From NCBI GenBank assembly GCA_965240325.2, contig OZ251243.1:1240001-1304000 (forward strand): a stretch of DNA of 64,000 nucleotides, read 5' to 3'. How positions within the stretch are numbered: position 1 is the stretch's first letter; every line of letters starts with the position of its first letter. The translations under genes were made by a program, and so were the position numbers. Under the pieces are notes generated by a model. The model had not been told where the DNA came from, did not search any database, and saw nothing but the letters and a program-made list of their open reading frames with translations. Of this stretch, positions 7,858 through 47,670 are shown in pieces. This DNA comes from Rebecca billardiae RCC1528. Lineage: Eukaryota; Protista; Haptophyta.

Positions 7858-8766
7858 GGCCTGTTTTATTTCTACGAGAGCCCAAAGGCGACATTCGCCA
7901 AGACGCGGTACAATGGCGGCTTGCCCGCTGGTGCGGGCCCCGGAGCTAGTCCGGAGAAGTGATGGCACGTCATTCGCGCATTCTCGTGTTGAGGCGCTGC
8001 GCTGTGGCGAAGGATGTTGTCAGACATGCTGATTCGCCTTGCCGTGGTGCTTCGCCTTGACACAGGGGTCACTCGCGGTGCACGGCAGTGTGCACGATGC
8101 AGCGGCGGCGAGCGGCGGCAAACCGCTGCAGCTGGAGGCCCTCTGCAAGCTGCAAGCACTCTGCCTTGGCTGCTGCGTCGCACCCGTGTCAGTTAGCGAC
8201 CAGTTCACAGCCAGATGGACTGCAATCGCCACCAGCTCTAAACGCTCCGCCGCCACTACCTTGTCGAGCTTGAGATGCTTCCGTTCGGCGTGCGCTTGCT
8301 TGCAGCTTGCCGCCTGCATTTGAACGTGATCGCGGAAGGTTAGTAGGCCGGATGCTCAGGCCTCCTCGGCGTATAATATTACAAGGTGCGTGCCACGCGC
8401 ACCCATGACGCGCGGAAAGGCGTGCACACGCGTCCTCGCGCATCTTTCAGGCTGCAGTCTTGGCCAAGATGATGAGAACAAGCCTGCCAGTGCCGCGCAG
8501 GCGCGAGCGCGCGGAGAGTTCTGGGATCCGACCCATGGTGTTGGGTGTACCTCGTGTGCGACAACGACGAGGCGGACGAGCGCCGCAACTGGATTCGTGC
8601 ACTCACCGGTCACCGAGGAGTGCACGAATCGCATTCCTTGCGCACGTGGGGGCCGCCATCGGCCGTGAGAGGTACACCCAACGGGGCGTGACACCGATTC
8701 CCACTGGCGAGCACGGGTTTGTCGCCGTGACATAGTAAATGGAATCTGGTAGAAATAAAACAGGCC
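7858..8766. mobile_element. Non-autonomous TIR element (~909 bp)
   Basis: 18-bp perfect TIR GGCCTGTTTTATTTCTAC (7858-7875; reverse complement at 8749-8766), GATG on both flanks, lower-GC interior with no convincing ORF. Confidence 0.7.
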
Positions 8767-9375
8767 GATGAGTCGTGCTGCTCGCGCTGATTGATGCGGC
8801 AGCGGCCGCCGCCGGACGAGTACGCGCCAGGCCATAACTAGTCGCCGTCAGCAGCGGACGATGTCTCACTGTGCTCATCGTCGATTGTCAGCAGCATATT
8901 ATAACTGCTATTTATTATTATTAATTATATATATAATTAATACTAATAATAACGACATAATTAGAGCCCGACGATGGCAGAGTCACTCATTAGACCGGCG
9001 GGGCCTGACGGTCTTCAGTCAGTCATCACTGGCATCCGAGCGGCAGCCAGTTAAGTACTACCTTGTAGTCTATAGTCGCGGGCTCCAGTGACGCATCATC
9101 AGGACTCGGTCTCAGAAGTGGCAGAGACAGAGCCAGAGGCGGGCAGTACTCGGACTATGAGTACTGTCTAGTCGGTAGTCTGTAAGATCGAGCGAGTAAT
9201 ATATCTGATGAGGGCGAGGCGCCGCGCTGCCGGCGGCCTGCCGCGGCCCGCGGCGGCCGTATAGTGCGGTCGTCTCACTCTCCGAGTCTCTCATCCCGTT
9301 GCAATGGCCGCCGTGTTTAACGCGCAGCGGCCGCCTATTCATTACGTCCGTCGCCGGAGCTGCGGAGCAGCCCTA

Positions 9376-9916
9376 CAGGCAATCGCGGGCAATAAGAAGT
9401 CAGAGGTCTCACGGCTAGTCTCGGTTTCTTAGCCGTTCGGTAGCCCGAGCGCCTACGGAGTCTCAGTTTCTTAGCTAGGTCCGCCCGCCGCGCAGGCGCG
9501 GGGGGCGCAGGGGGGCAGAGCCCCCCGCTGAGTCTTTAGGCCCGGCCGGCGAGGCCGAAGAAAATTTTGGGCCTTTTTGGAGCAAATCTGGCATGATGTT
9601 GCATGGATGCTGCGGTGCACTGGCCAGGAGTCAGTCATCAGGAGAAGTTGGGACTTGGCCTGTACTCGTAGTCGGGCCGCGCACCGCGTCCCCGACGTAC
9701 GCGGGCCGACTGCGGCCTCGCCCTCGGCGGACTGCCACTCCGGCACTCGTCAGCCGGGACGACGTAGTCCCGGTTTCTTAGTGTGACTATGCGTATAGCG
9801 AACCAGCCAATCGCTAGTCTCAGTTTCTAGGCCAGATCCGCAGATCGATAGCAAGCCCCAGTTTCTTAATAACGTGACAGCTCCGCGCCTTATTGCGCCC
9901 GCGATTATTGCCCGTG
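9376..9916. mobile_element. MITE-like element with imperfect TIRs and internal repeats
   Basis: Left CAGGCAATCGCGGGCAATAAG versus right CTTATTGCGCCCGCGATTATTGCCCGTG; five copies of a GTCTC(A/G)GTTTCTTA-like motif at about 9418, 9460, 9767, 9817 and 9855. Confidence 0.5.
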
Positions 9917-10239
9917 TCACAGTCTCTGACTCACTAGTCTGACGGCACTGGAATCACGGATCAGAGAGACAGGGTAGTAGCGCCTGCTGGTTCATCCCCC
10001 CCATCAAAAGGACATCCTGGGGGAAGGGGGTCTTCAACATACTGAAACTGGTGCAGCATTTCTAAGGCAGTAAGCTAGCTATCAGTATATGTCGCGGTGT
10101 CGATTGGACCGATGGATCGGCAGCCGGACTCGGACGGCGACGCGGTGCCGTGACCCAGCCGCCACGCGCAGTAGTTGTGCCGTGGTGCCCCGGCTCGCAG
10201 GCAGGCCCCACCCGCACGCTCGGCACGCCCCCTCCAGGC

Positions 10240-15866: not shown

Positions 15867-16739
15867 CAGTTTACTAATAAGAATAAGAGACGCACACAGC
15901 TCAGGCAGGCGAGATTGACGCCCGCCAACTGTCACCGCCCATGAAGCCGTCGCCGATGGTAGCGCCGCCGGAAAAATTCGTTCCAGTACGCATATGCCGG
16001 CCATATCGGCGGCCTCCGAGCTGAAGCGGGGTTCGGTCCTAGCCGCGCGCGCACGCCCGTATATATATAAAGTCGCGGTAGACGACGACGGTATATTATT
16101 CTGATGCGTCGTACGACCGTTCGTCATCGGCCCGAATAATCGCATGTACCTGTGTCGTGCTAACATGTGCAGTTCCATAAGGATTTACTATTATTTAGAC
16201 GAATTTTAGTTATCGCGTAGTATTATATAATAATGGCCCGCGGTGCAGGGCGGAGCGCGCAGCGTGGAGCCCGCGCACCAGCGGGCCCGAACCACGTTTC
16301 AAAAAGATCTTTGATCAAGAAAAAAGGGACGGGGGGCGATTTTTAGGGCTGGCGGAGACCGAGTTTCGAGTTTTTGAGATCGCATAGAGAGGTCTATTAG
16401 GCCGAAAATAACCGCGCCCAGCTGATTCCCTTAAGTAAAGTGCGATCTGGACGTCAGCTGGACGTGACATTAGTGTAACGGTTCGTTACGAGCGCGATTT
16501 TATATTGTGGGTAGACTCTCGTTCATGTGTGATAGTTTGCCTCCGCCTTGATGAATATGACCGCGTTCCGCGGTCCTTTTCCGTAGAACGAACGTAGTTC
16601 GGGGCCCGCGGTGGCGGTGCACCCTCCGTCGCGCAGTCGTCTAACTCTACCATCGGCGACGGCTTCATGGGCGGTGACAGCTGGCGGGCGTCAATCTCGC
16701 CTGCCTGAGCTGTGTGCGTCTCTTATTCTTAGTAAACTG
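15867..16739. mobile_element. Tc1/mariner-like MITE or pair of inverted TIR fragments (~95 bp arms, TA flanks)
   Basis: TA|CAGTTTAC...GTAAACTG|TA; arms 15867-15962 and about 16647-16739 are near-identical inverted copies. Confidence 0.6.
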
Positions 16740-19700
16740 TAGCAGTAGACTCCAGCGGCGCGCCGCCGCCTCGGCCGCGCCGGGCCGCCGGGGCGCCCGG
16801 GGCCGGGCGGGCCCAGTCGCAGCCGCCGCCGCGGCGCCGATATTGTGTACAGGCGGATGCGACGAGGCGTGATCGACGCATGAGCGCGACTCCACGTGCA
16901 CGCCAGGCCACGCGGAGCAGACAGCCAGGGAGCACGGTGCGGGGCCGCGGATTCGTTCGGGCCGCTGCGCCTGCTGCTGACCGCGCTGTCCCGTCACCGC
17001 GCGCCGGCAGCGGCCACGGGATAGATGATTTGCACTGGTCCGAGTAGGGTTCGACCAGCGCCTGCGCGACGGCCGACAGGCGGGCGCGAGGCGTGATCGA
17101 CGCATGAGCGCAACTCTACGTGCACGCCAGGCCACGCGGAGCTGACAGCCAGGGAGCACGGTGCCGCGGTGCGAGGCGAGGCCGCGGATTCGAGCCGAGC
17201 AGCCACAGCACCGGTGCCTTCGCGCGCGCCGCGCGTGGACCGGGTGACACACCTCGGTCAGGCTCGGCACGCGTCGCAGAGGCACGGCCAGCTCTGGGAG
17301 CGTCGCGCACCACCGTCGCCCGCGCTGCTCGTCCTCCTATGTCCGTCCGTCCAGCGCTAGACAGACTTGCCGGCGCGGGCTGATGACCCAGCCATTTCAA
17401 CTTTCATGCAAGCATGCCGCTCTGCGCATCGATGGGACACGCGTGCGGAGGCGCGTGGCGGCGCACTCGAGGTGAGCAGGGCGCGAGGGGAAGACTGACG
17501 TCCGCGGGACCCCGCCACCACTGCCCGCTGCCCAGGCGCCGTGTGTCACGGCAGCGTACAGACAGTACCGTCGCCTGCTCGGTTAGTCCGTCTTCCGTGG
17601 GAGACCCCGGGAAGGCATGACGAGGGGGGCGCGTGGTGAAGTCGGAGACTCAGATGTCGATCAGTCCGCCATCAGGCGCCGCTGCCCCCGTGCTTGCGAG
17701 AGCCCGAAAGGGCGGCTCGGGCCTGCCGCGGCCGGTCGCGGGCGGCACGCGCGGTGCACGATTCCGCGCGCAGGCATCGATGATCGATCGATAGGGCGGC
17801 GGGGGCGCGCGGAGTTCAGAGTGAGCGGGGCACGAACGCGATGTCGACGGCCGTCGGGGCCCACCACAGCCGCGCGCTCCAGACGCCACTCGCCGCGCGC
17901 ACCTCGTGAGACGTGCTCGGCATCATGTCCACGTGAGCGGCAAAAAAGTGGCCTCGAGCCTGCTCAGGCCTGCTCTTAAAGTGCGCACAACTGGCTCGCC
18001 AGAGGGCAAAACATTATAATGTATGAAAACGAAGCGGTGCAAATGATGTTCTCCAGTATAGTGGATACGACCCCGACGAAGCGATTTTATGCCTGCGTGA
18101 ACCATACATATGAATACGAAGCGCGGTGCATTATAATGTATGAAAACGAAGCGGTGCAAATGATGTTCTCCAGTATAGTGGATACGACCCCGACGAAGCG
18201 ATTTTATGCCTGCGTGAACCATACATATGAATACGAAGCGCGGTGCAAATGTTCTCCAGTAGTGAATACGACCCCGACGAAGCCAATATATATATCGGTT
18301 GGTTACTTCGCTGATCCCGTAAGGACGTGCAAAAATAGCCTCAAAGAAGCTGACGCTTGTATTGGACTTGTAACCGTCCTACTTCACACAGAAGTGAACT
18401 CTCACGCCCGGCCGTCCACGATTGATTAGGGGAATGTCGTGGACGCGGTTTTTTTCTCCGTGATGCATCTGTAGAGAGGGTCTCAAAATTCGAAACTCGG
18501 TCTCCGCCAGCCCTAAAAATCGGCCCCCGCGTCCCTTTTTCTTGATCAAAGATCTTTTTGAAACGTGGTTCCGGCCCGCTGGTGCGGGCTCCACGCTGCG
18601 CGCTCCGCCCTGCACCGCGGGCCATGAACAGTTTGGCTTCGCGGCGGTTGGTATCTAGAGTCTAAAACCCGCAAGCCTTATTGAAAATACCCGCGCAGCT
18701 ATTCGTTGCCAGCCCATTCCATAGTCACTGACTTACCGAGCTGGCGAGCTCAAAACCTGCCGCCGTCGCAAGGACGACGTGCTGTGCAGGTTTCTTCTGG
18801 GGTGGCGAGCGAGCCGCGACGACTCTTGGTTGGTCCGCAAGGGGGCGCTCGATGGGCAGGTGCGCGTGGCAAGTGCCGAGTGGCGCCTGGAGCGCGCGTC
18901 TGCGGCGGGTCCCGACGGCCGTCGACATCGCGTTCGTGCCCGCTCACTAGTCACTCCGCACGCCCCTGCCGCGCCCTGTCGATGCCTGCGCGGCCGGCCG
19001 GCGCGCGGCCGCGCCGCCGCCGCCGCAGCCGCCGCCCTGTGTTCGGGCTCTCGCAAGCTCGGGGGCAGCGGCGCATGATGCCGGACTGATCGATCTCTGA
19101 GTCTCCGACTTCACCACACGCCCCCCTTGCCATGCCTCTCCGCCAGGGTCTCCCAGAACTCTTCTTCAGAGCAGGCGCAAGTCGAACTCGGAACTGGCCG
19201 CGGCCCCGCGCGCCGTCGGCTCCCCGTGGCTGTCAGCTCCGCGTGGCCTGGGCGCCTGGCGTGCCCAGAGCTGGCCGTGCCTCTGCGACGCGTGCCGAGC
19301 CTGACCGAGGTGTGTCACCCCGTGCACGCGCGGCGCGCGCAAGCACCGGTGCTGCATGGCTGCTCGCACCGTGCTCCCTGGCTCGCGGTCAGTCAGCTCG
19401 GCCGCGTGGTGCCTGGTGTGCACGTAGAGTCGCGCTCATGCGTCGCTCACGCCTCGCGCCCGCCTGTCGGCCGTCGCGCAGGCGCGCAGGTCGAACCCTA
19501 CTGACCTGCAGATCATCTACTCCTGCGCTGCTGGCGTCGCGGCGACGACGGTCAGCGGCAGGCCCGAACGAACGGTCGAATCCGCGCGGTCCCGCGCCGT
19601 CCGGCTCCCTGGCTGTCAGTCACTCACTCAGTCAGCTCCGCCGGTGGCCTGGCGAGCAAGAGTCGCGCTCGTGCGTCGATCACGCCGAGTCGCATCCGCC

Positions 19701-23900: not shown

Positions 23901-24336
23901 CAGCGATCCCGGTTCGTTGAAAAAGTTCGCGAACGGGTTCGCGAACGGTCTTCGTTCGCCTAGGTTCGCGTTCGTTCGCCTCATCGGCTGGCCTCGGGCG
24001 AAGTTCGCGAACTCGCGAACCGGTTCGCGAACTACGCGAACCTGTTCGTGAACCCCCCACTGTCAATCTCCCATATGTAAGCGGCCAATCTCAAGGTAAT
24101 CTTGGGTCGATATTCCAATACGATTTCCGCCAAACTGGGAGAATATTCAATATTTAATCAAGTTTTCCTATTAAATCGAATAAATAATCGGTTCGCGTAC
24201 GGTTCGCGAAAGTTTGCGAGTTCGTTCGCGAGAGGGCCGTCGGGGAGGCAGTGAGTTCGCGAACTCCCGTGGTTCGCGAACCAAGGTAGTTCGTGAGTTC
24301 GTTCGCGAGGCCAGATTACACGAACCGGGATCGCTG
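23901..24336. mobile_element. hAT-type MITE (436 bp)
   Basis: 16-bp TIR CAGCGATCCCGGTTCG, perfect 8-bp TSD GCGTCAGC (23893-23900 and 24337-24344), and many subterminal GTTCGCGAAC-like palindromes. Confidence 0.92.
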
Positions 24337-24730
24337 GCGTCAGCGCCATCGGCCAATCGGTGCGGCGGTGCCGGCAGCGTCCGTGCGCGGCGTGCCGCGG
24401 CACTGCCACTTCAGCCGCCAGCCGAGCACGGCCTCTGCTCGGCAGAGTCATCGTCCAGCCGAGCAGTAGTCAGTTCGTCACGGTCGTAGCGCGCGCGCGC
24501 ATATTGCTGACTACATCGTCGTAGTAGTTATTAGTTACTACACATCATGCGCACTTTCGTGGCGGATGCCGCTGATGAGGCCGCCGGATTAGACGACACC
24601 GATATGTAGGTCACGGACAGCTCGGCGCACAGCACCCACCGAGGCGCTCGGTAGCCTGGACTGCACGTCGCCTCTCGCCTGCGCCACCCCCCTAGCTAGT
24701 CGGCGCGCCATGGCCGCATCCCGGCGCTCC

Positions 24731-25903
24731 TCACTCGTGATGGCTCCGCAGCGCCACGCGCGCTCCCATGCCCTCGAGGTCGGCCAGCGTGCGCGCGGGC
24801 TCGACCGCCGAGCCCATCAGGTGGAGGCCCGGGCGGCGGATGGTGCCGTCGAGCAGCTGCGCGGCGCACGAGGCCACGGCGGCGGCGGTGAAGTCGTACG
24901 CGTCGGCGCTCGTCACGGTCAGCACGGCCCGAGTCCGGGCGCCAGGGTCCGGTGCGCTGGGGTCTGCCGCCCGCCCGTGGTGGCGCGGCGGCGCGGCCGT
25001 GCTCGCCGCCGCGGCGCGCGTGCCCTCCACCTCCGCGCGGAAGACGACGCCGTCGCCGCGTGTGCCAAAGGTGCGCACGCCCCAGTTGAACGCGCCGGTG
25101 AGCGCGCCCACGCTCCGACGCCCGAGCACCATCGCCGCCGGCATCAGTACAAAGTCAGTCAACCAGTTGAAGCCTGCGGCATAGGAGCCCGCGCTCTCAA
25201 GGCCCGGGCGTGCGGCATCGAGCGCCTCGAGCTCGAGCATGCGCACCGGGAAGCACTCCTGCTTGCCGAAGGTGGCGCCGAGGTCGGCCACCGCGCTGTC
25301 CCTGTACGTCGCCGCGCGCCACGCGCCGCCCTCCAGCACGCGGCCCGAGTAGCTGGCGCACTCCTCCAGCAGCTCGCGCGCGGCGGCGGCCGAGTCGAAC
25401 GAGGCGCCGCCAAACGCCATGAAGACGCGCGCGGTGCGCAGCGTGGCGAGGCCGCGCGCGGCGTGGCGCACGAGCGGGGACACCAGCCCCGGGTGGCACC
25501 CCGCCTGCGTCACGACCACGCGCCCCGCCGCCGCAATCTCAGACTGCATCTCGGCGAGACGTTGATAGACGTCCGCCCTGAAGAGCACGTCGATCGTGTC
25601 GGTGTGCGTGGCGAGGGCGGCTCGGACGATGGACGGGATGGCGTCTGGGGTGGTTGTGGTGATAACGAGCAGGTCGATGGACCGGAGTGCTTCCGTCAGC
25701 AACGTTGCATCCGTCGCGTCCACACGCGCGCCGCGCACGACCCGGCCGGGGAAGTCGGTGGCGAGCGCGGCCGCGTGCGCGTGGGCACGCTCGAGGTCAC
25801 GACCGGCGACGACGACCTCGCACGAGAGCTGCTCGAGGAGGCGCCGTGAGACCAGGCGGCCCGTGCCGCCGTATCCGCCGAGGACCATCACACGGACGAC
25901 CAT
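24731..25903 (-). CDS. Saccharopine dehydrogenase-like NAD(P)-dependent oxidoreductase, intronless
   Basis: N-terminal Rossmann VMVLGGYGGTG, VVVAGRD, QAGCHPGL, C-terminal RPGLHLMG. Confidence 0.8.
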   Translation of the reverse strand: MVVRVMVLGGYGGTGRLVSRRLLEQLSCEVVVAGRDLERAHAHAAALATDFPGRVVRGARVDATDATLLTEALRSIDLLVITTTTPDAIPSIVRAALATHTDTIDVLFRADVYQRLAEMQSEIAAAGRVVVTQAGCHPGLVSPLVRHAARGLATLRTARVFMAFGGASFDSAAAARELLEECASYSGRVLEGGAWRAATYRDSAVADLGATFGKQECFPVRMLELEALDAARPGLESAGSYAAGFNWLTDFVLMPAAMVLGRRSVGALTGAFNWGVRTFGTRGDGVVFRAEVEGTRAAAASTAAPPRHHGRAADPSAPDPGARTRAVLTVTSADAYDFTAAAVASCAAQLLDGTIRRPGLHLMGSAVEPARTLADLEGMGARVALRSHHE

Positions 25904-26116: not shown

Positions 26117-28447
26117 TCAGTACGCGCCGTCTGAGTCGCGCCCGCCGCCGCCCGCGCCGCCCGACGCCTCGGGCCGGCGCACCGCGCGCAGCTGCCCCCC
26201 CACGTACGGCTTGAGGTAGTTGTCATCGATCAGCCGCCACGCCTGGTGGAACGCCGAGGCGGGCGGGTCCTCGAGCGACGAGCGCAGCGCGGACGGAACC
26301 CGGCGCATCGGGTGCGACGCACCGCCGCCGCCGCCGCCCGCCCCGCCGCCGCCCCCTCCAGACGCGTCCAGCAGCGTCTGCGCCAGCGGCGGGCGCGCTC
26401 CCGGCGCCTCGTCCTCGGCCAAGTCCATGCTGAGGAGAGCCGTCAGCCGTCAGCCGTCAGACACGCCCGGGGCCGGCAGGGGCAACGGGGGCGCGGGGAG
26501 GGAGGGGCTCAGCAGCCGCACTCGCTCGGCCGCACCGCGCTCGGTGGCGCCCCGCTCGGCGGTGCGGTGCGGTGCGCGGTGCGGCGGCGCGGTGCGCGGT
26601 GCGGCGCGCGGTGCGGCGCGCGCACCAGCGGAGCAGCGGCTTGGTGAGCGGCCCGACCACCAGGTTGGTGAAGAGGATGATCACGAGGGTGGAGGTGACG
26701 ATTGCCGGCGCGTACGTCCAGCGCGTCTCGTCCAGCGTGATCGCCAGCGCGAAGGCGATCGCGCCGCGCAGCCCCGCAAACCACACCACCACCGCCATGC
26801 GCCACCCAATCACGTGCCGCCGGGAGCGCAGGCAGCAGTTGGCGAGCGCGAGCAGCGGGAAGACCGCCAGCGCGCGCGCGGCGAGGGTGAGGCCGAGCGA
26901 GGCGCCGATCAGCGCAAAGTCCCACTCGTGACGCTCCCGGAACGAGAAGGGCGCGAGCCCCAGCGTGAAGCAGATCGACGTGTCCGCCACCTGCGCCAGC
27001 GCCTTGAGCGTCACCTCCGCCGAGGTGCGCGCGTGCGGGGACAGGTTGTAGTGGCCGTAGTGCCGCATCACAATGGCAGCCACAAACAGGGCGAGGATGC
27101 CCGAGAGGCGGAGCGCCTCGGCCAGGACGTAGCTCCCCGTCGCGAAGATCAGCTGCAGCGCGACCTCCATCTCGGGCTCCACCGCCACGCCGCCGCCGTC
27201 CGCGCCGCCGCCGCCGCCGCCAAACCCGGCTGCTGCGCCCGGCAGCGCGCCGCCCGCCGCCGAGCGCACACTCGGGATCGGCACGTGCACGGGGGCGTGC
27301 ACGGGGCACGCCGGGCGGCCGGCGGCGCGGCCGGAGGCGGCGGCGGAGAGCGCGGCGTCCGACTCGCGCTCGGCCGCGGCGAGCGCCTGCACCGCGCGCA
27401 CTTGCGCCTTGTGCCGCCCCGCCAGCCCGCGCACGCGCAGCGACGTCGCGGAGCTCCCCACGCCCACCGCAGCGCCCAGCCCCACCGCGCCCACGATGTT
27501 GCGCACAAAGTCGCCCACAATCGACGGCGCGTCGAACGACTCGAGCGGCGAGTCGGCGTGCGCGATCGCCGCCGTGCGGAACACGTTGAAGATCACGATG
27601 CTCACCGCGTCGTTGAGCGCCGACTCGCCGAAGATCAGATTGGACAAGACCGTCGGCGCCTTCATTTCTTTGAGGATCGAAAGTGTCGCCACCGGGTCGG
27701 TGGAGGCGATCAGGCAACCGAACAGGAGGCAGGCGAGCAGCGCGTTGCCGCCGCCGAGCAGCGTGGGCGAGGCGATGACGCCGCGCGTGATCAGCGCGTA
27801 CAGCGAGAAGCCCATCGCCAGCGCCGCGATCAGCGTGCCGGGCACCGCCTGCGCCGCACCGCACCGCACCCCGCGGCAGTCGCGCGGCAGCAGCAAGCGC
27901 GCGCGGCGGCGGCGCGTGAGGCCGGGCTCGCGCTCGGCGCGCGGCGCGCGCGCCAAGCCGAGCGCGGCACGCGGCGGCGCGCGGCGGCCTGTGGCCAACC
28001 TCGCTCGCTTCCTCCTCTGCCCCCGCGCGCGCCCGCTCCCGTCCCTCCGCGCGCCGCGCGTGCCGGCTGCCGCACCAGCAGCAGGATGGTGAAGAAGTTC
28101 TGGAAGAAGTGCCGCTTCCGCATCGTGTAGCCGGCGACGAAGATGAGCGGCGGCAGCATGGCGTAGTAGATGAGGTCGTGCAGCGCCTGCGCGCGCAGGA
28201 TCTTGAGCGGCGCGACCGGGAGCACGAGCCACGCCACCCACCCCGTGAGCAGCCCGATGAGCATCGCCACGCCCGACTCTGTCACAAACGTGACGTCGTG
28301 CCGCTTGAGCGTGTGCGCGAGCAGCATGGAGACGAGCAGCATGGTGGCGCCAAGGAGGAGGACTACGGGCGTCACCTCCTCCTCCGACCCGTCGCCCTCC
28401 GGCGCGGGCGACGGCGGCGCGAGCGGCGGCGGCGGCGACTCGAACAT
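26117..28447 (-). CDS. Na+/H+ exchanger (CPA1, NHX/NHE type); 3 exons
   Basis: MLPPLIFVAGYTMRKRHFFQNF, IASTDPVATL, IFGESALNDAVSIV, LSGIL, WFAGLRGAIAFAL. Confidence 0.92.
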
Positions 28448-29225
28448 GCTCGCGGCGCCGTGGGCCACCGGTCCGCGCGGGGCGTCGGCGGAAGATGCGG
28501 TCACTGTGGTCACCTTGAGCGCTCACCGACGAGGCGGGCAAAAACAAATCGCGCGCACAAAAATATGCGCGGGCAGAATGGCGGCCCGCGCGTCCCGTTG
28601 ACCCGTTCTGAACACGACACCGATTCCAGGTGCCACGCCCACGGCAGCCGCACCGACGACCGACGACGGGCACGGATTGACACAGCAGTGTACTTGTATC
28701 AGAAACGTCAGTGGTGTTCAGAATCGTGCATCGGACAGAGCGGGCGGCACGGGTCAGACGGCGGCTGCGCACAGCCCAACCGGCGCACGCGCCCCGGGGC
28801 CGACTGTCATCAATGCTGTCTCGCTGAAAGTGAAACGCGGAGGGAGGCACCAAACGCCGAAACGGTTGGCAGCACGGACGAGCAAACTGCAGAGTGACGA
28901 CGCGCGTGTCCCGCGGCTTGCGGTGGTAAGCCTTGGGTCGTTGCATGACTGTCACGCGGCGCCGCAGCTGCCATCCTGCGCCGTCGGCCCTTTGCTCCGT
29001 CCGCAGCAGCTCGAGGCTCGAGTGTGCATGTCAGCGCGCGGCACGCCCGCCACGGCGAGCGTCGCGCGCGTCACAGTCGCCGCTCCGCCGCCGCCGTCCG
29101 CACGGCCGGCGGCGGCCATTGGCGCGCGGCCGCGCGGCCCACCAGGGCGCGCGCGGGGGAGCACGGCGTGGCCCGCGCGGGCGGCGGCGGCGGCTGCGCG
29201 GCGCAGGCCGCGCATCTCTGCCCGC

Positions 29226-43884: not shown

Positions 43885-44741
43885 GACCCGTTGCAAGCGT
43901 GAGCGCCGAAAAAACGACACTTCGGCGGCCTAGAGTGACGATACAGTCTTGCAGGCGGCGGCGGCGGCGGCGGGAGCGTGACAGTGCGTCTACCATCACC
44001 TTCCGTCTAGCGCGCTACGCCGCGCGTGCCGGGTAGTGCCCCCGGCCCGCCGCAGCAGCAGCCTCGACAAGTGAAGAGACGATGACCGCGGACGCAGTGC
44101 CGCCGAGTACAGCCTGCATCCACTTGCCGCGCGGCGCGCACTGTAGTTGCACTTGCAGCGCTCGCGCTCGGCGAGCATGGGCGTGCGCTCAGGCGTGGCA
44201 AGTGCTGTCTCGTCGGCGCGCTTTCGCCTGCCACCTCGTGCACCCGTGCACGCAGCTTCATCGTCTTCATGAGGACTGCTGTGCTGCTGTCGCCATCACC
44301 CGAGTCCGAGTCGCGCGCGGCGCGCGCGGTGGCAGCTGTGCACCGCAGAGTGTCACCGCTGCTGCTTCGCAGCAGTCATCAGCAGCTGCGTCGTCATCCT
44401 CCTCGTCGTCGGCTTCCACTGCCGCAAGAGGGAACGCTGCCAAAGCTGCAGTTGGGAGGCAAGCCCTTCTCTCTTCCCACCGCGGCGCGCGCGCTGCGAC
44501 AGCCCTCCCCGTTTCCTTCTCTTGACCACCTGCTGAGGGTTTTGCAGCTCGATCTCGGCAACGGCAGCACCTGGCGACGAACGGATTGGATTGGTGCACG
44601 GGGAATTGGATTCCCCGTGCACCAATCCGCTCGGCTCGTCGCGCCCGGCAGCCATCGCCCAGCGCTAGTTGCAAAACCGTATTTTCACCGGTACGTCGCA
44701 TTTTCACCGCCCTGTACGGTCACTCACCCGTGCAACGGGTC
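43885..44741. mobile_element. Non-autonomous TIR element (857 bp) with an internal 19-bp hairpin
   Basis: TIR GACCCGTTGCA (43885-43895 and 44731-44741), TGATGAT on both flanks, perfect hairpin at 44588-44628. Confidence 0.7.
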
Positions 44742-45080
44742 TGATGATGACGATATATATGCTGACACTACGATCATCGTCGATCGACTATTAGTTATTC
44801 GTCTCGGACTGGCGGGTCTGCGGGCGGCACTGGGGCCCGTGGGCCTTATGAGTTATGGCACGCGGACGCGACTCAGTCTGCTGCACTCAGCACTGTCTGC
44901 AGTCAGACTCAGCAGTATATAGACGATCGACGCGTATTCAGTCCGTAGTATCGGCTGCTGACCCGCAGCTCGGACCGTGACTCGTGAGTACCGGATCGTC
45001 AGCGCCGTCCCGGACTACTGAGCCGTATAGTCGCCCGGCTCGGCTCACTTCGCGGCGCGGCCCGGTCGACGCAGGGCGTC

Positions 45081-45345
45081 GTGTGTGGGGGTAGACGGTG
45101 CCGCCACCCCACCCCGCCTCCCCAGCCCTCCCCAGCCCTCGTCCCTGATTCTCAGACGAGCCACATCGAGCCACATCGAGCCACGTCGAGCCACGTCGAG
45201 CCACATCGAGCCACCCCGCCGCCACCCCACCCCGCCTCCCCAGCCCTCCCAGCCCTCCACCGAGTCTACGGCTCGTCATCCCCGATTCTCAGTCGAGCCA
45301 CGACGACCCCCGCCGAGCCTTCGGTGCCGCCGCCCCACCCCGCCC
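45081..45345 (+). repeat. Left terminal inverted repeat of the PLV
   Basis: Starts GTGTGTGGGGGTAGACGGTGCCGCCACCCC; about 53 bp identical to the reverse complement of the right end, then modular CGAGCCAC(A/G)T repeats. Confidence 0.92.
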
Positions 45346-45414
45346 ACGACCCACGACGACCCACGACGACCCACGACGACCCACGAGCCACCATCCCACC
45401 ACGAGCCCCGAGCC

Positions 45415-45755
45415 GCCCCACGAAGCCCCACGAAGCCCCACGAAGCCCCACCGTACTGAACTCATTTTTGAGCATCCGGACTCATGTGCAGTTAAAGGAT
45501 AGCGACCCTCATGAAAAGCGCCCTCACAGAGCCCCACGAAGCCCCACGAAGCCCGTGGCGGTTCGTAGTTAAAGACAAGCGGTCTAGGTGAAAAAGCGCC
45601 CTCACGGAGCCCCACGAAGCCCCCACGAAGCCCGTGGCGGTTCGTAGTTAAAGACAAGCGGTCTAGGTGAAAAAGCGCCCTCACGGAGCCCCACGAAGCC
45701 CCACGAAGCCCCACGGCTCGTAGTTAAAGACAAGCGGCCTAGGTGAAAAAGCGAC
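45415..45755 (+). repeat. Iteron-like direct repeats upstream of the Rep-like gene
   Basis: GCCCCACGAA decamers plus three 76-79 bp units with GTAGTTAAAGACAAGCGG(T/C)CTAGGTGAAAAAGCG at 45565, 45644 and 45720. Confidence 0.85.
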
Positions 45756-45766
45756 CGAAGCGGAAT

Positions 45767-46714
45767 ATGCCGTCCAAGCACACTCCGCTCGCGCGATCGC
45801 ACTGGGAGTTCGTTTTTGCGGGCTGCGATGAGCACAACGCCCTGCACGAGCACGTGAAGGCAAAGACGCTCGACACGCTCGAGGGCGGGAAGCACGGCCG
45901 GCTGACGTCAGCGAGCACGCTCGAGGGCATCACGCTCGTCCTCACGCTCGACTACCGCCGCTCGTGCCGCGTGCAGGAGATCAACGGCGAGGTGCGCATG
46001 CCCTCCCTCAAGTTTGGCACTGCCTTCGCCAAGATCAAGCACGGCTTCAACACGCCGTGCGCGGAGTACTTTGCGAGGCGCGAGGCGAAGCTGCTGGGGC
46101 AAGTCGACGTGCTCCAGACGTCCACGTTCGACCCGCTCCCGACGAGCTCGCTCCCACCGCCGTTGCTCTTCGAGCCCAACGTGATGCAGAAGGAGTGGAT
46201 GGAGACCTTTGCCAAGCCCTTCCCGCAGGACGCGACGGCGAACACGGTCTGGTTCGCGAGCGACAAGACTGGCCAGATCGGCAAGTCGACGATGTGCGAC
46301 TACATATCGGAGCAGCCCATGTCCACGGGCGTGCTCCCCCTCATCGAGTACTACGACATCCCAGGCAGCACGCGAGCGATCATCGTCGCACGCCTCCGCA
46401 ACGGGCCCATCGATCACATTTTCTTTGACCTGACGAAGATCACGACTTTGGTGGGCGTGCCGAACTGGTTCTGGGGCCTGCTCGAGAACCTGGCGGGTGG
46501 GAAGGTGCCGGGCACGTCGAAGATCCCGTTCAAGCGCATCCGCAAGCCGTGGGTGATCGTCGCGGCGAACTTTGCGCCGGACGTCGAGGTGATCAACCAG
46601 CGCAAGCGCATGATCGTCGTTGACGTGAACGAGACCTACACGCCTGAGGAGCTCAACACGGGTGCTCCAGGCGCTCGCTACCCGGAGCTTCCGAAGCGCT
46701 TCAAGGTTTCTTAG
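45767..46714 (+). CDS. SF3 helicase resembling a CRESS-DNA virus Rep
   Basis: Walker A VWFASDKTGQIGKST, Walker B HIFFDL, motif C PWVIVAANFAPD, Arg-finger-like RKRMIVV; 315 aa. Confidence 0.75.
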   Translation: MPSKHTPLARSHWEFVFAGCDEHNALHEHVKAKTLDTLEGGKHGRLTSASTLEGITLVLTLDYRRSCRVQEINGEVRMPSLKFGTAFAKIKHGFNTPCAEYFARREAKLLGQVDVLQTSTFDPLPTSSLPPPLLFEPNVMQKEWMETFAKPFPQDATANTVWFASDKTGQIGKSTMCDYISEQPMSTGVLPLIEYYDIPGSTRAIIVARLRNGPIDHIFFDLTKITTLVGVPNWFWGLLENLAGGKVPGTSKIPFKRIRKPWVIVAANFAPDVEVINQRKRMIVVDVNETYTPEELNTGAPGARYPELPKRFKVS

Positions 46715-46849
46715 GCTTCTTTAGCGGTGTCGCCTTAGGAGCAGGCGCCAAGAACGCAAGCCAAATGAACTGGCCAATGCTAGTTCCAACTACAAGCGCA
46801 AACAGCAGAGCACACCACATAGGAGCGGCTAAGATTTGATTAAATTTGA

Positions 46850-47653
46850 TTAAGCAGATCCACGAAGCGATGCCAGCGCCTCGGCAGCATCCCTCTCTCG
46901 CAGGATTTCTCGGACGAGATTTACTCTGATCTTTAGATTTGACGCAATTGTCTGCTCTAGAAATTCGGGAGTCCAGCCCAGCTGATTAGATCTCGTCAAG
47001 AATGAATTGAGGTATGAATTGATTCTGCCTTCGGCAATAGCCTTGTTAGTAGTTCGAGTGGAGCTTCTAACTACAGGCAGTTCATTATCAACGGATGCAC
47101 CCCCAGACAAGTCCGGTACTGACGGGACTCTGGACCTGGCAGAACTGGAGCGGCTTGGTCCGGCGGGGGAAGGCGTCGCGGGCACGAGGATCTTCGCGGG
47201 CGTTGTGGGCGCCGTCGCGGGTCTCCCCGCAGGACGATTGGCGGAGTCAGAGCTCGTCATAGTAGGCGCCGGCTGCGACCGCACCACCAGCCGCGAGATC
47301 GGCTGACCGCTGGCATCGCGTTGCGGGAATTTTAGGTGCTTTGCATCGTAGTGGCCCTCATCCGTCGTGAACTGGCCGAGGTCGTACACGCCGGGGGCGA
47401 CGCGCCCAAAGCTGGTCTTGGTCTTTTGGGGTGGCCCTCGCCTGGCTATCGTGACCAGCGCAGGCAATATCATGGGTTTCTTGTGGTGCACGAGCTTACG
47501 CGAGCTTGGACCTGGATGCAAGCCTGACCACCACCCGTCTTTCTTACCTCGATGATGCATGGCGCCGGCATACGGCGTGCCGTTCAGCGTGAAGTGGGTC
47601 ACTCGCGCTGGCACCGTGTCGCGGAAGGTATGATGATGGACTGCAGTCGCCAT
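46850..47653 (-). CDS. PLV hypothetical protein (267 aa)
   Basis: ATG in AT-rich context, fills the gap between viral genes; no motif recognised. Confidence 0.6.
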   Translation of the reverse strand: MATAVHHHTFRDTVPARVTHFTLNGTPYAGAMHHRGKKDGWWSGLHPGPSSRKLVHHKKPMILPALVTIARRGPPQKTKTSFGRVAPGVYDLGQFTTDEGHYDAKHLKFPQRDASGQPISRLVVRSQPAPTMTSSDSANRPAGRPATAPTTPAKILVPATPSPAGPSRSSSARSRVPSVPDLSGGASVDNELPVVRSSTRTTNKAIAEGRINSYLNSFLTRSNQLGWTPEFLEQTIASNLKIRVNLVREILRERDAAEALASLRGSA

Positions 47654-47670
47654 ATTAATGCTACCGCGGA

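Follow-up and report, generated by a model that had tools for sequence, protein, structure and literature searches.

Large T of polyomaviruses and E1 of papillomaviruses are Rep-derived initiators of double-stranded DNA (dsDNA) replicons, in which an inactive nuclease-fold domain that binds the origin precedes a superfamily 3 (SF3) helicase. Bidnaviruses combine a stand-alone SF3 helicase of the parvovirus type with a polinton-derived family B DNA polymerase (PolB) and terminal inverted repeats (TIRs) (PMC4061559, PMC11071296), and a parvovirus/polinton hybrid intermediate has been proposed at their origin (PMC4061559). In surveys of polinton-like viruses (PLVs), the replication modules consist of a protein-primed PolB (pPolB) or of SF1 or SF3 helicases fused to a primase or to PolA, and HUH endonuclease genes are reported only for mriyavirus-related clusters (10.64898/2026.06.19.733378). 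The HUH proteins of mriyaviruses are stand-alone, catalytically intact and SIRV1-like, and are encoded in polymerase-less genomes (PMC11253617). Here we analyzed 64,000 nt of the haptophyte Rebecca billardiae RCC1528 (GCA_965240325.2, contig OZ251243.1, positions 1,240,001 to 1,304,000; hereafter the window, with position 1 as its first nucleotide), which contain a polinton-like element of ~16.6 kb with a pPolB gene. The first gene inside the left TIR of this element encodes a protein whose C-terminal half is homologous to the helicases of the Reps of CRESS DNA viruses (circular, single-stranded and encoding a Rep) and whose N-terminal region has no detectable HUH motifs. The literature searched yielded no account of a pPolB polinton-like element with a CRESS-type Rep helicase in it.

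An intact Rep-like gene with few relatives

The original prediction, a model's reading of the sequence alone, described the gene as a Rep captured from a single-stranded DNA (ssDNA) virus. Its 315-codon frame is indeed intact from ATG to stop, and the product is organized as follows:

45767–46714, + strand: Rep-like gene, 315 aa, intact, in an uninterrupted ATG-to-stop frame
45767–46141, + strand: N-terminal region (residues 1–125), of uncharacterized fold, with no detectable HUH motifs
46181–46654, + strand: predicted SF3 helicase domain of the CRESS-Rep type (residues ~139–296), from profiles, alignment and AlphaFold2 (AF2)

An alternative in-frame GTG start at 45743 would lengthen the product to 323 aa. 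Among the strings quoted in the prediction, SHWEFVF, AEYFAR, IFFDL, LLENL..G and PWVIVAANFAPD are present in that order, and one other is absent from the window. A chance open frame in GC-rich DNA was ruled out by the homology and motif conservation described below.

Searches of the 315-aa protein against Pfam, PHROGs, NCBIfam and PDB sequences returned nothing at E ≤ 10, and word-indexed protein search and viral-contig searches gave no match. A PDB profile search with a 4-sequence alignment returned noise only, and look-ups of clusters supplied no informative names. An exhaustive phmmer search of 1.84 billion representative proteins yielded two relatives, P0001 (236 aa, E 2e-17) and P0002 (365 aa, E 5e-10), which both align over residues ~121–296 only and each lie on a ~1.4-kb JGI contig without neighboring genes. 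P0001 and P0002 come from JGI samples 3300009469 and 3300016822, respectively. A scan of bacterial and archaeal genomes (GTDB representatives) found no relatives. By sequence comparison, the protein is thus nearly an orphan, in a family of three members (the window protein, P0001 and P0002). A variant from the same sample as P0002, P0003, has a single internal deletion that takes out the helicase core. Two contigs of this sample (JGI 3300016822), L002 and L003, hold diverged copies of the P0002 gene that are 97% identical over their shared 5' part; the gene family is therefore multi-copy in the sample. At the DNA level, none of the contigs L001–L003 matches the window.

Relation of the C-terminal half to CRESS Rep helicases

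We scanned metagenomes for the pattern of the three-protein alignment (window protein, P0001 and P0002; alignment A1, which holds no Reps) and obtained one contig, L004 (1–1889). The ends of this contig overlap by 55 nt, giving a circle of ~1.83 kb that is a complete CRESS-virus genome with genes for a capsid protein with an arginine-rich N-terminus and a Rep; upstream of rep it carries a stem-loop and iterons in the form of tandem 9-mers. The L004 Rep was searched as two separate halves, being split by the contig junction; its nuclease part shows the motif pattern of HUH enzymes and a weak match to Viral_Rep. With the L004 helicase half added, the alignment led to 38 proteins of 190–360 aa on ~2-kb contigs (family A3, Reps only). 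Pfam Viral_Rep was matched by 14 of the 38, and the A3 profile matched solved Rep nuclease domains (6h8o/2hwt, E 2e-11; 8fr5, E 3e-9; 2hw0, E 0.52). Because of these matches to Viral_Rep and to nuclease structures and because of the ~2-kb contigs, the A3 proteins were taken as bona fide Reps. The best match of the A3 nuclease domain, as distinct from the window protein, is the nanovirus-type Rep nuclease (2hwt/6h8o), which fits loosely with the nanovirus/alphasatellite impression of the original prediction.

Circularity was avoided by two tests. First, hhalign of A1, without Reps, against A3, of Reps only, gave a probability of 97.3% (E 1.7e-11) over 138 columns that cover window residues 139–290. 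Second, a hidden Markov model (HMM) built from A3 alone was run over the 566 open reading frames (ORFs) of the window together with P0001–P0003, and it matched P0002 (E 4e-11), P0001 (E 1e-10) and the window ORF (E 1.5e-6), with the next best match at E 1.6; every match lay in the helicase part of the model.

The helicase motifs of the window protein sit in columns that are invariant or nearly so across the 38 Reps. The kept positions, among them the catalytic columns, are G169, G172, K173 and S174 of Walker A (GxxGKS, residues 169–174), D221 of Walker B, E240 and G245, together with N268 and P271 of motif C and R281 as the candidate arginine finger. CRESS Reps such as that of L004 have this same order of motifs (Walker A, single-Asp Walker B, Glu, motif C Asn-x-x-Pro, Arg), and they are also of similar overall size, with N-terminal ~125–140 residues followed by a linker and the helicase. 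Unlike in the Reps, the Rep-invariant hairpin residues that contact DNA (the K..D.RY columns) are not kept in the three-member clade. Together, these comparisons support the assignment of the C-terminal half as an SF3 helicase of the CRESS-Rep type, homologous to Rep helicases as expected for the C-terminal part of a CRESS Rep, and they bear out the preference of the original prediction for a Rep-type over a D5-like helicase.

Other identities were considered for this half. A D5-like identity was rejected: D5_N, primase and other SF3 families gave zero Pfam, NCBIfam or PHROG matches at E ≤ 10, and no D5-type family is found among the named top entries of the structural comparison given below, so that the protein does not look like an ordinary PLV/D5 SF3 helicase. 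Pfam likewise showed no match to Parvo_NS1. A packaging ATPase was also rejected, the element having a separate A32-like gene.

Shared helicase sequence could also mean that the protein belongs to an old SF3 lineage of polinton-like elements or their hosts, from which the CRESS Rep family took its helicase or from which both inherited it. Identity to the Reps is only about 20–25%, the clade does not have the hairpin columns just mentioned, and the Pfam SF3 models are matched by neither the window clade nor the A3 family, all of which would agree with such an ancestry; so would the documented chimerism of Rep nuclease and helicase domains (PMC5923481). Against it, the clade is very rare, with 3 proteins, as compared with abundant Rep helicases, and a full-length Rep as ancestor would account for how long the N-terminal region is and for the collinear linker. 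Moreover, the surveyed PLV replication modules include no Rep-type proteins (10.64898/2026.06.19.733378). We regard this ancestry as unlikely.

Predicted structure of the helicase domain

The AF2 model built from a five-sequence alignment had a mean predicted local distance difference test score (pLDDT) of 42.9 and was too poor to use. With a 41-sequence alignment, residues ~130–300 were predicted at pLDDT 80–93. A Foldseek search with this model against the PDB gave generic AAA+/SF3 matches only, at E ~1e-3 (RuvB, MCM, adeno-associated virus (AAV) 2 Rep40 and papillomavirus E1). Against BFVD, 95 matches were obtained at E ≤ 1e-3 (best 3e-8), and among the top 50 of these 95 all the named entries are Reps of CRESS viruses or satellites. 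The helicase-only alignments to BFVD entries extend over ~150 columns with a root-mean-square deviation of ~3 Å.

The N-terminal region

For the N-terminus, the original prediction suggested relics of rolling-circle replication motifs I (SHWEFVF) and III (AEYFAR) without a clear HUH motif II, and it supposed that, if nicking survived, the protein would be an integration enzyme analogous to AAV Rep. In its strongest form, this means that the region is an active, highly diverged HUH nuclease that nicks the terminal repeats and that a Rep-type integration replaces the integrase. Several observations suit this idea. In length the region equals a Rep nuclease domain, and it stands collinearly ahead of the helicase, before the same linker as in Reps. 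In a forced MAFFT alignment, SHWEFVF falls below motif I and Y101 below the tyrosine column of motif III. The secondary structure predicted at low confidence (a strand, a helix, a hairpin, strands and a helix from near Y101) has an order compatible with an HUH-like layout. In addition, iterated repeats lie directly upstream of the gene, and neither an integrase domain nor a clean target-site duplication (TSD) was found, as detailed below.

Other observations speak against it. The N-terminal 125 residues match no Pfam family, including Viral_Rep, and no PDB profile. When the N-terminal alignment was compared with the HUH domain of the Reps, hhalign gave a probability of 0.13%, and the Rep HMM matches helicase positions only. 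At motif II, 35 of 35 Reps have the His and Gln, in whose columns the window protein has T60 and D62; at the tyrosine column of motif III, P0002 carries G and P0001 carries H. Compared with each other, the window protein and P0002 show no significant similarity in their N-terminal regions, and P0001 has no such region. In both AF2 runs, pLDDT was 31–62 over residues 1–125, even with 35 nuclease domains aligned. The secondary-structure order that is compatible with an HUH fold thus comes from an unreliable model, and the proposed relics of motifs I and III gained no statistical support. The HUH endonuclease with motifs I, II (HUH/HUQ) and III (YxxK) that characterizes a CRESS Rep is not detected here.

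Judged from sequence and models, surviving nickase activity is unlikely, and we give very little credence to the full scheme of nicking followed by Rep-type integration. Rep-driven integration is unsupported because no HUH nuclease signal is seen, whether by sequence, by profile or by confident fold, and the suggestion that the Rep accounts for the missing integrase and TSD is likewise unsupported.

The SHWEF segment (residues 9–16, 45791–45814) resembles AHW[QD]xV, which lies just upstream of the helicase in P0001 and P0002 (BLASTP E 0.042, not significant). Going by this resemblance, the segment may represent a linker motif specific to this family instead of the relic of a nuclease.

Repeats upstream of the gene

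Between the left TIR and the start codon lie two sets of repeats:

45415–45707, + strand: the 10-mer GCCCCACGAA, found here in eight exact copies where chance would give 0.2
45514–45753, + strand: a 79-bp unit repeated in tandem three times, up to a few bases short of the start codon

The 10-mer is confined to this cluster upstream of the Rep-like gene; it occurs nowhere else in the window, and none is found at the right end of the element. Each 79-bp unit holds 10-mers, a small hairpin and the 18-mer GTAGTTAAAGACAAGCGG. These repeats may be iteron-like binding sites or promoter elements. Taken as single-stranded DNA, the repeat region folds no better than shuffled sequence (z 0.36), a search near the gene for the nonanucleotide read from L004 gave no meaningful match, and no stem-loop of the nonanucleotide type or origin-like hairpin was found near it, which adds to the case against an active nickase.

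The polinton-like element and its genes

The original prediction placed the gene inside a pPolB dsDNA virus, and the surrounding DNA agrees with this. Because of its TIRs, its low GC content, its pPolB and its A32-like ATPase, we identify the unit as a polinton-like element:

45080–61652, no strand: polinton-like element, ~16.6 kb, TIR-bounded, low GC
45080–45386, no strand: left TIR, with an interior of 10-bp tandem sub-repeats
61403–61652, no strand: right TIR, from repeat analysis
47671–48374, − strand: A32-like packaging ATPase gene with one frameshift (Pfam Pox_A32)
52615–54324, − strand: 569-aa protein with a concanavalin/LamG-like domain (Laminin_G_3, E 5.9e-13)
55981–60582, − strand: intact gene for a protein-primed family B DNA polymerase of 1533 aa (Pfam DNA_pol_B_2)

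The outermost 54 nt of the TIRs, starting at 45080 and ending at 61652, are 100% complementary, and the arms reach ~250–300 nt as arrays of 10-bp sub-repeats. The GC content of the element is about 0.58–0.62 as against 0.72–0.80 in the flanks, and the low-GC block, with 0.57–0.62, occupies about 44–62 kb of the window. In the pPolB, DNA_pol_B_2 was matched over residues 990–1283 (E 1.3e-7, 31.4 bits, cut-off 25.8). The element thereby has both the TIRs bounding a unit of 15–40 kb and the pPolB by which polintons and PLVs are recognized. The flanking bases of the two TIRs do not match, that is, there is no clean TSD, and no integrase (rve or tyrosine recombinase) was found at Pfam E ≤ 0.1 in the ten largest other ORFs of the element, small ORFs being unscanned.

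In the A32-like ATPase gene, Pox_A32 was matched slightly below the Pfam cut-off of 22.8 (E 1.4e-4, 21.9 bits), and Walker A and Walker B lie in different frames. Because of this one frameshift, the element is probably not fully intact, barring an assembly error or a short intron in the gene. The element also holds several ORFs without family assignment, among which the candidates for a double jelly-roll major capsid protein and a penton protein, at 49810–51123 and 48815–49777, gave no Pfam or PDB sequence match. No relatives of the pPolB and of a 437-aa ORF were found in viral contigs.

The decay of the ATPase gene raises the question of whether the Rep-like gene is itself a passenger, that is, an endogenized remnant of a CRESS Rep or a host copy with no role in the element and with decayed sequence as its N-terminus. 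The unconserved N-terminal region could be read in this way, as could the occurrence of a deleted variant of a relative in another sample. The GC content at third codon positions (GC3) of the gene is 0.90, above the 0.62–0.69 of several neighboring genes, but it is close to the 0.85 of the pPolB gene. A full frame of 315 codons with all ATPase motifs would not be expected under neutral decay; the gene occupies an orderly site, with the TIR on one side and the next gene on the other, and is preceded by a repeat array of its own; and it has no flanking repeats such as would mark a nested insertion. We therefore think it improbable that the gene is a fossil.

Some further features were noted within the element and around it. 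The N-terminal extension of the pPolB, of ~900 residues, has no assigned domain but a weak Endonuclease_7-like stretch (E 0.015), and it has no PDB sequence match. Adjoining the ATPase gene is a proline-rich ORF of 149 aa with 12-bp tandem repeats (48390–48839, − strand). Over about 1 kb just outside the left TIR, at 44000–45079, the GC content is 0.63–0.66 and a 69-nt near-palindrome occurs at 44538–44678; this low-GC stretch could have been left by another insertion or could belong to the target site. Beyond the right TIR, a 12-bp tandem repeat of about 7 copies follows after ~175 bp (61827–61907), and a long repeat with a 6-bp period lies near the end of the window (63745–63994). Islands of low GC content (0.55–0.64) in the flanks of ~0.75 GC, at 8001–10000, 16001–17000, 18001–19000 and 24001–25000, may be other mobile-element remnants or intergenic DNA, and no matches to the Rep-like protein were found in them. 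The sole flanking ORF with a clear family encodes a Na+/H+ exchanger (26460–28955, − strand, E 9e-40); Pfam gave no match for nine further long ORFs in the flanks, and the window yielded no tRNA genes.

Discussion

We consider it, on balance, somewhat probable that the gene encodes a Rep-type helicase of the pPolB element, related to CRESS Reps, with the nuclease signature of its N-terminus lost or replaced, and with a likely role in replication that involves neither nicking nor integration. The protein would descend from the Reps of CRESS ssDNA viruses or share recent ancestry with them. Its C-terminal half would work as a complete SF3 helicase/ATPase of the CRESS-Rep type, and its N-terminal ~125 residues would stand in the place of the HUH nuclease, the signature having been lost or the domain exchanged. 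It may assemble at the terminal region, perhaps by binding the 10-bp repeats that are iterated upstream of the gene, and there open the origin or unwind DNA for the protein-primed synthesis by the pPolB, and it would neither nick DNA nor integrate the element. The profiles uphold the part of the original prediction in which a Rep-type helicase was captured; its replicative role, the binding to the repeats and a transfer from ssDNA virus to element are inferred.

Several points weigh against this account. The link to CRESS Reps is seen at the profile level only, single-sequence searches yielded no Rep, and the A3 family was reached via one metagenomic contig, so that what counts as nearest depends on the search path. 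The alignment behind the confident AF2 model is dominated by Reps and may have pulled the predicted shape toward them, and the shallow-alignment model was uninformative as a control for this bias in Foldseek. No relative turned up in comparable genomic surroundings. The transfer may also have run in the other direction. A helicase is not strictly needed by pPolB elements, and since the element is decaying, as the one frameshift in its ATPase gene shows, the function of the gene may have been lost.

A further step would be that the N-terminus is a cryptic, catalytically dead Rep nuclease fold that now serves as an origin-binding domain for the 10-bp repeats by the left TIR. We hold this to be conceivable, if rather doubtful. 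Such an origin-binding role is only inferred, by analogy with large T and E1. As a working model, the protein would share their initiator layout, and E1 and AAV Rep40 are among its PDB fold matches; in contrast to such a scheme, there is no sequence or profile link to these initiators, the fold matches are weak (E ~1e-3), and the replicon here is linear and protein-primed, not circular. If true, a CRESS Rep would have been turned into the initiator helicase of a linear, protein-primed dsDNA element, in an independent replay of the presumed step to the polyomavirus and papillomavirus initiators and as a living counterpart of the proposed hybrid ancestor of bidnaviruses.

The closest architectural parallel is found in the bidnaviruses, whose replicon likewise unites a pPolB and TIRs with an SF3 helicase of the Rep family that has no working rolling-circle nuclease. 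The likeness is architectural only: theirs is a helicase of the NS1 type in a small, segmented ssDNA genome with a jelly-roll capsid, whereas the element described here has a CRESS-type helicase on a dsDNA polinton-like backbone of ~16 kb with an A32-like ATPase. As compared with CRESS viruses themselves, the Rep-like gene lies in a 16.6-kb TIR-bounded pPolB element and not on a circle of ~2 kb that also holds a capsid gene, iterons and a stem-loop with a nonanucleotide, and its product lacks detectable HUH motifs and a confident nuclease fold. The SF3 proteins of PLVs and virophages (AEP-S3H, TVpol/PolA-S3H and D5-like) also place an SF3 helicase within a replication module, but the window protein has no primase, PolA or D5 domain, and whereas theirs usually replaces the pPolB, here the helicase accompanies it. 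Mriyaviruses and the related PLVs resemble the element in that replication genes of the rolling-circle type occur in mid-size dsDNA viruses of protists; unlike them, the element keeps the helicase, without a nuclease signature, and has a pPolB.

For the element itself, these results probably mean a borrowed helicase and not an integration enzyme, and the route of integration is left unexplained by the finding. The three-member, almost unsampled protein family marks a gap in the surveys of viruses and transposons, and a new kind of replication module would join the catalog for polinton-like elements. Until now, the case for gene flow between small Rep-encoding ssDNA viruses and polinton-like dsDNA elements has been built mainly on its end products, namely the bidnaviruses and the initiators of polyomaviruses and papillomaviruses. 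An element with a pPolB, TIRs and an ATPase together with a nuclease-stripped Rep-type helicase would exemplify the hybrid stage that those scenarios need.

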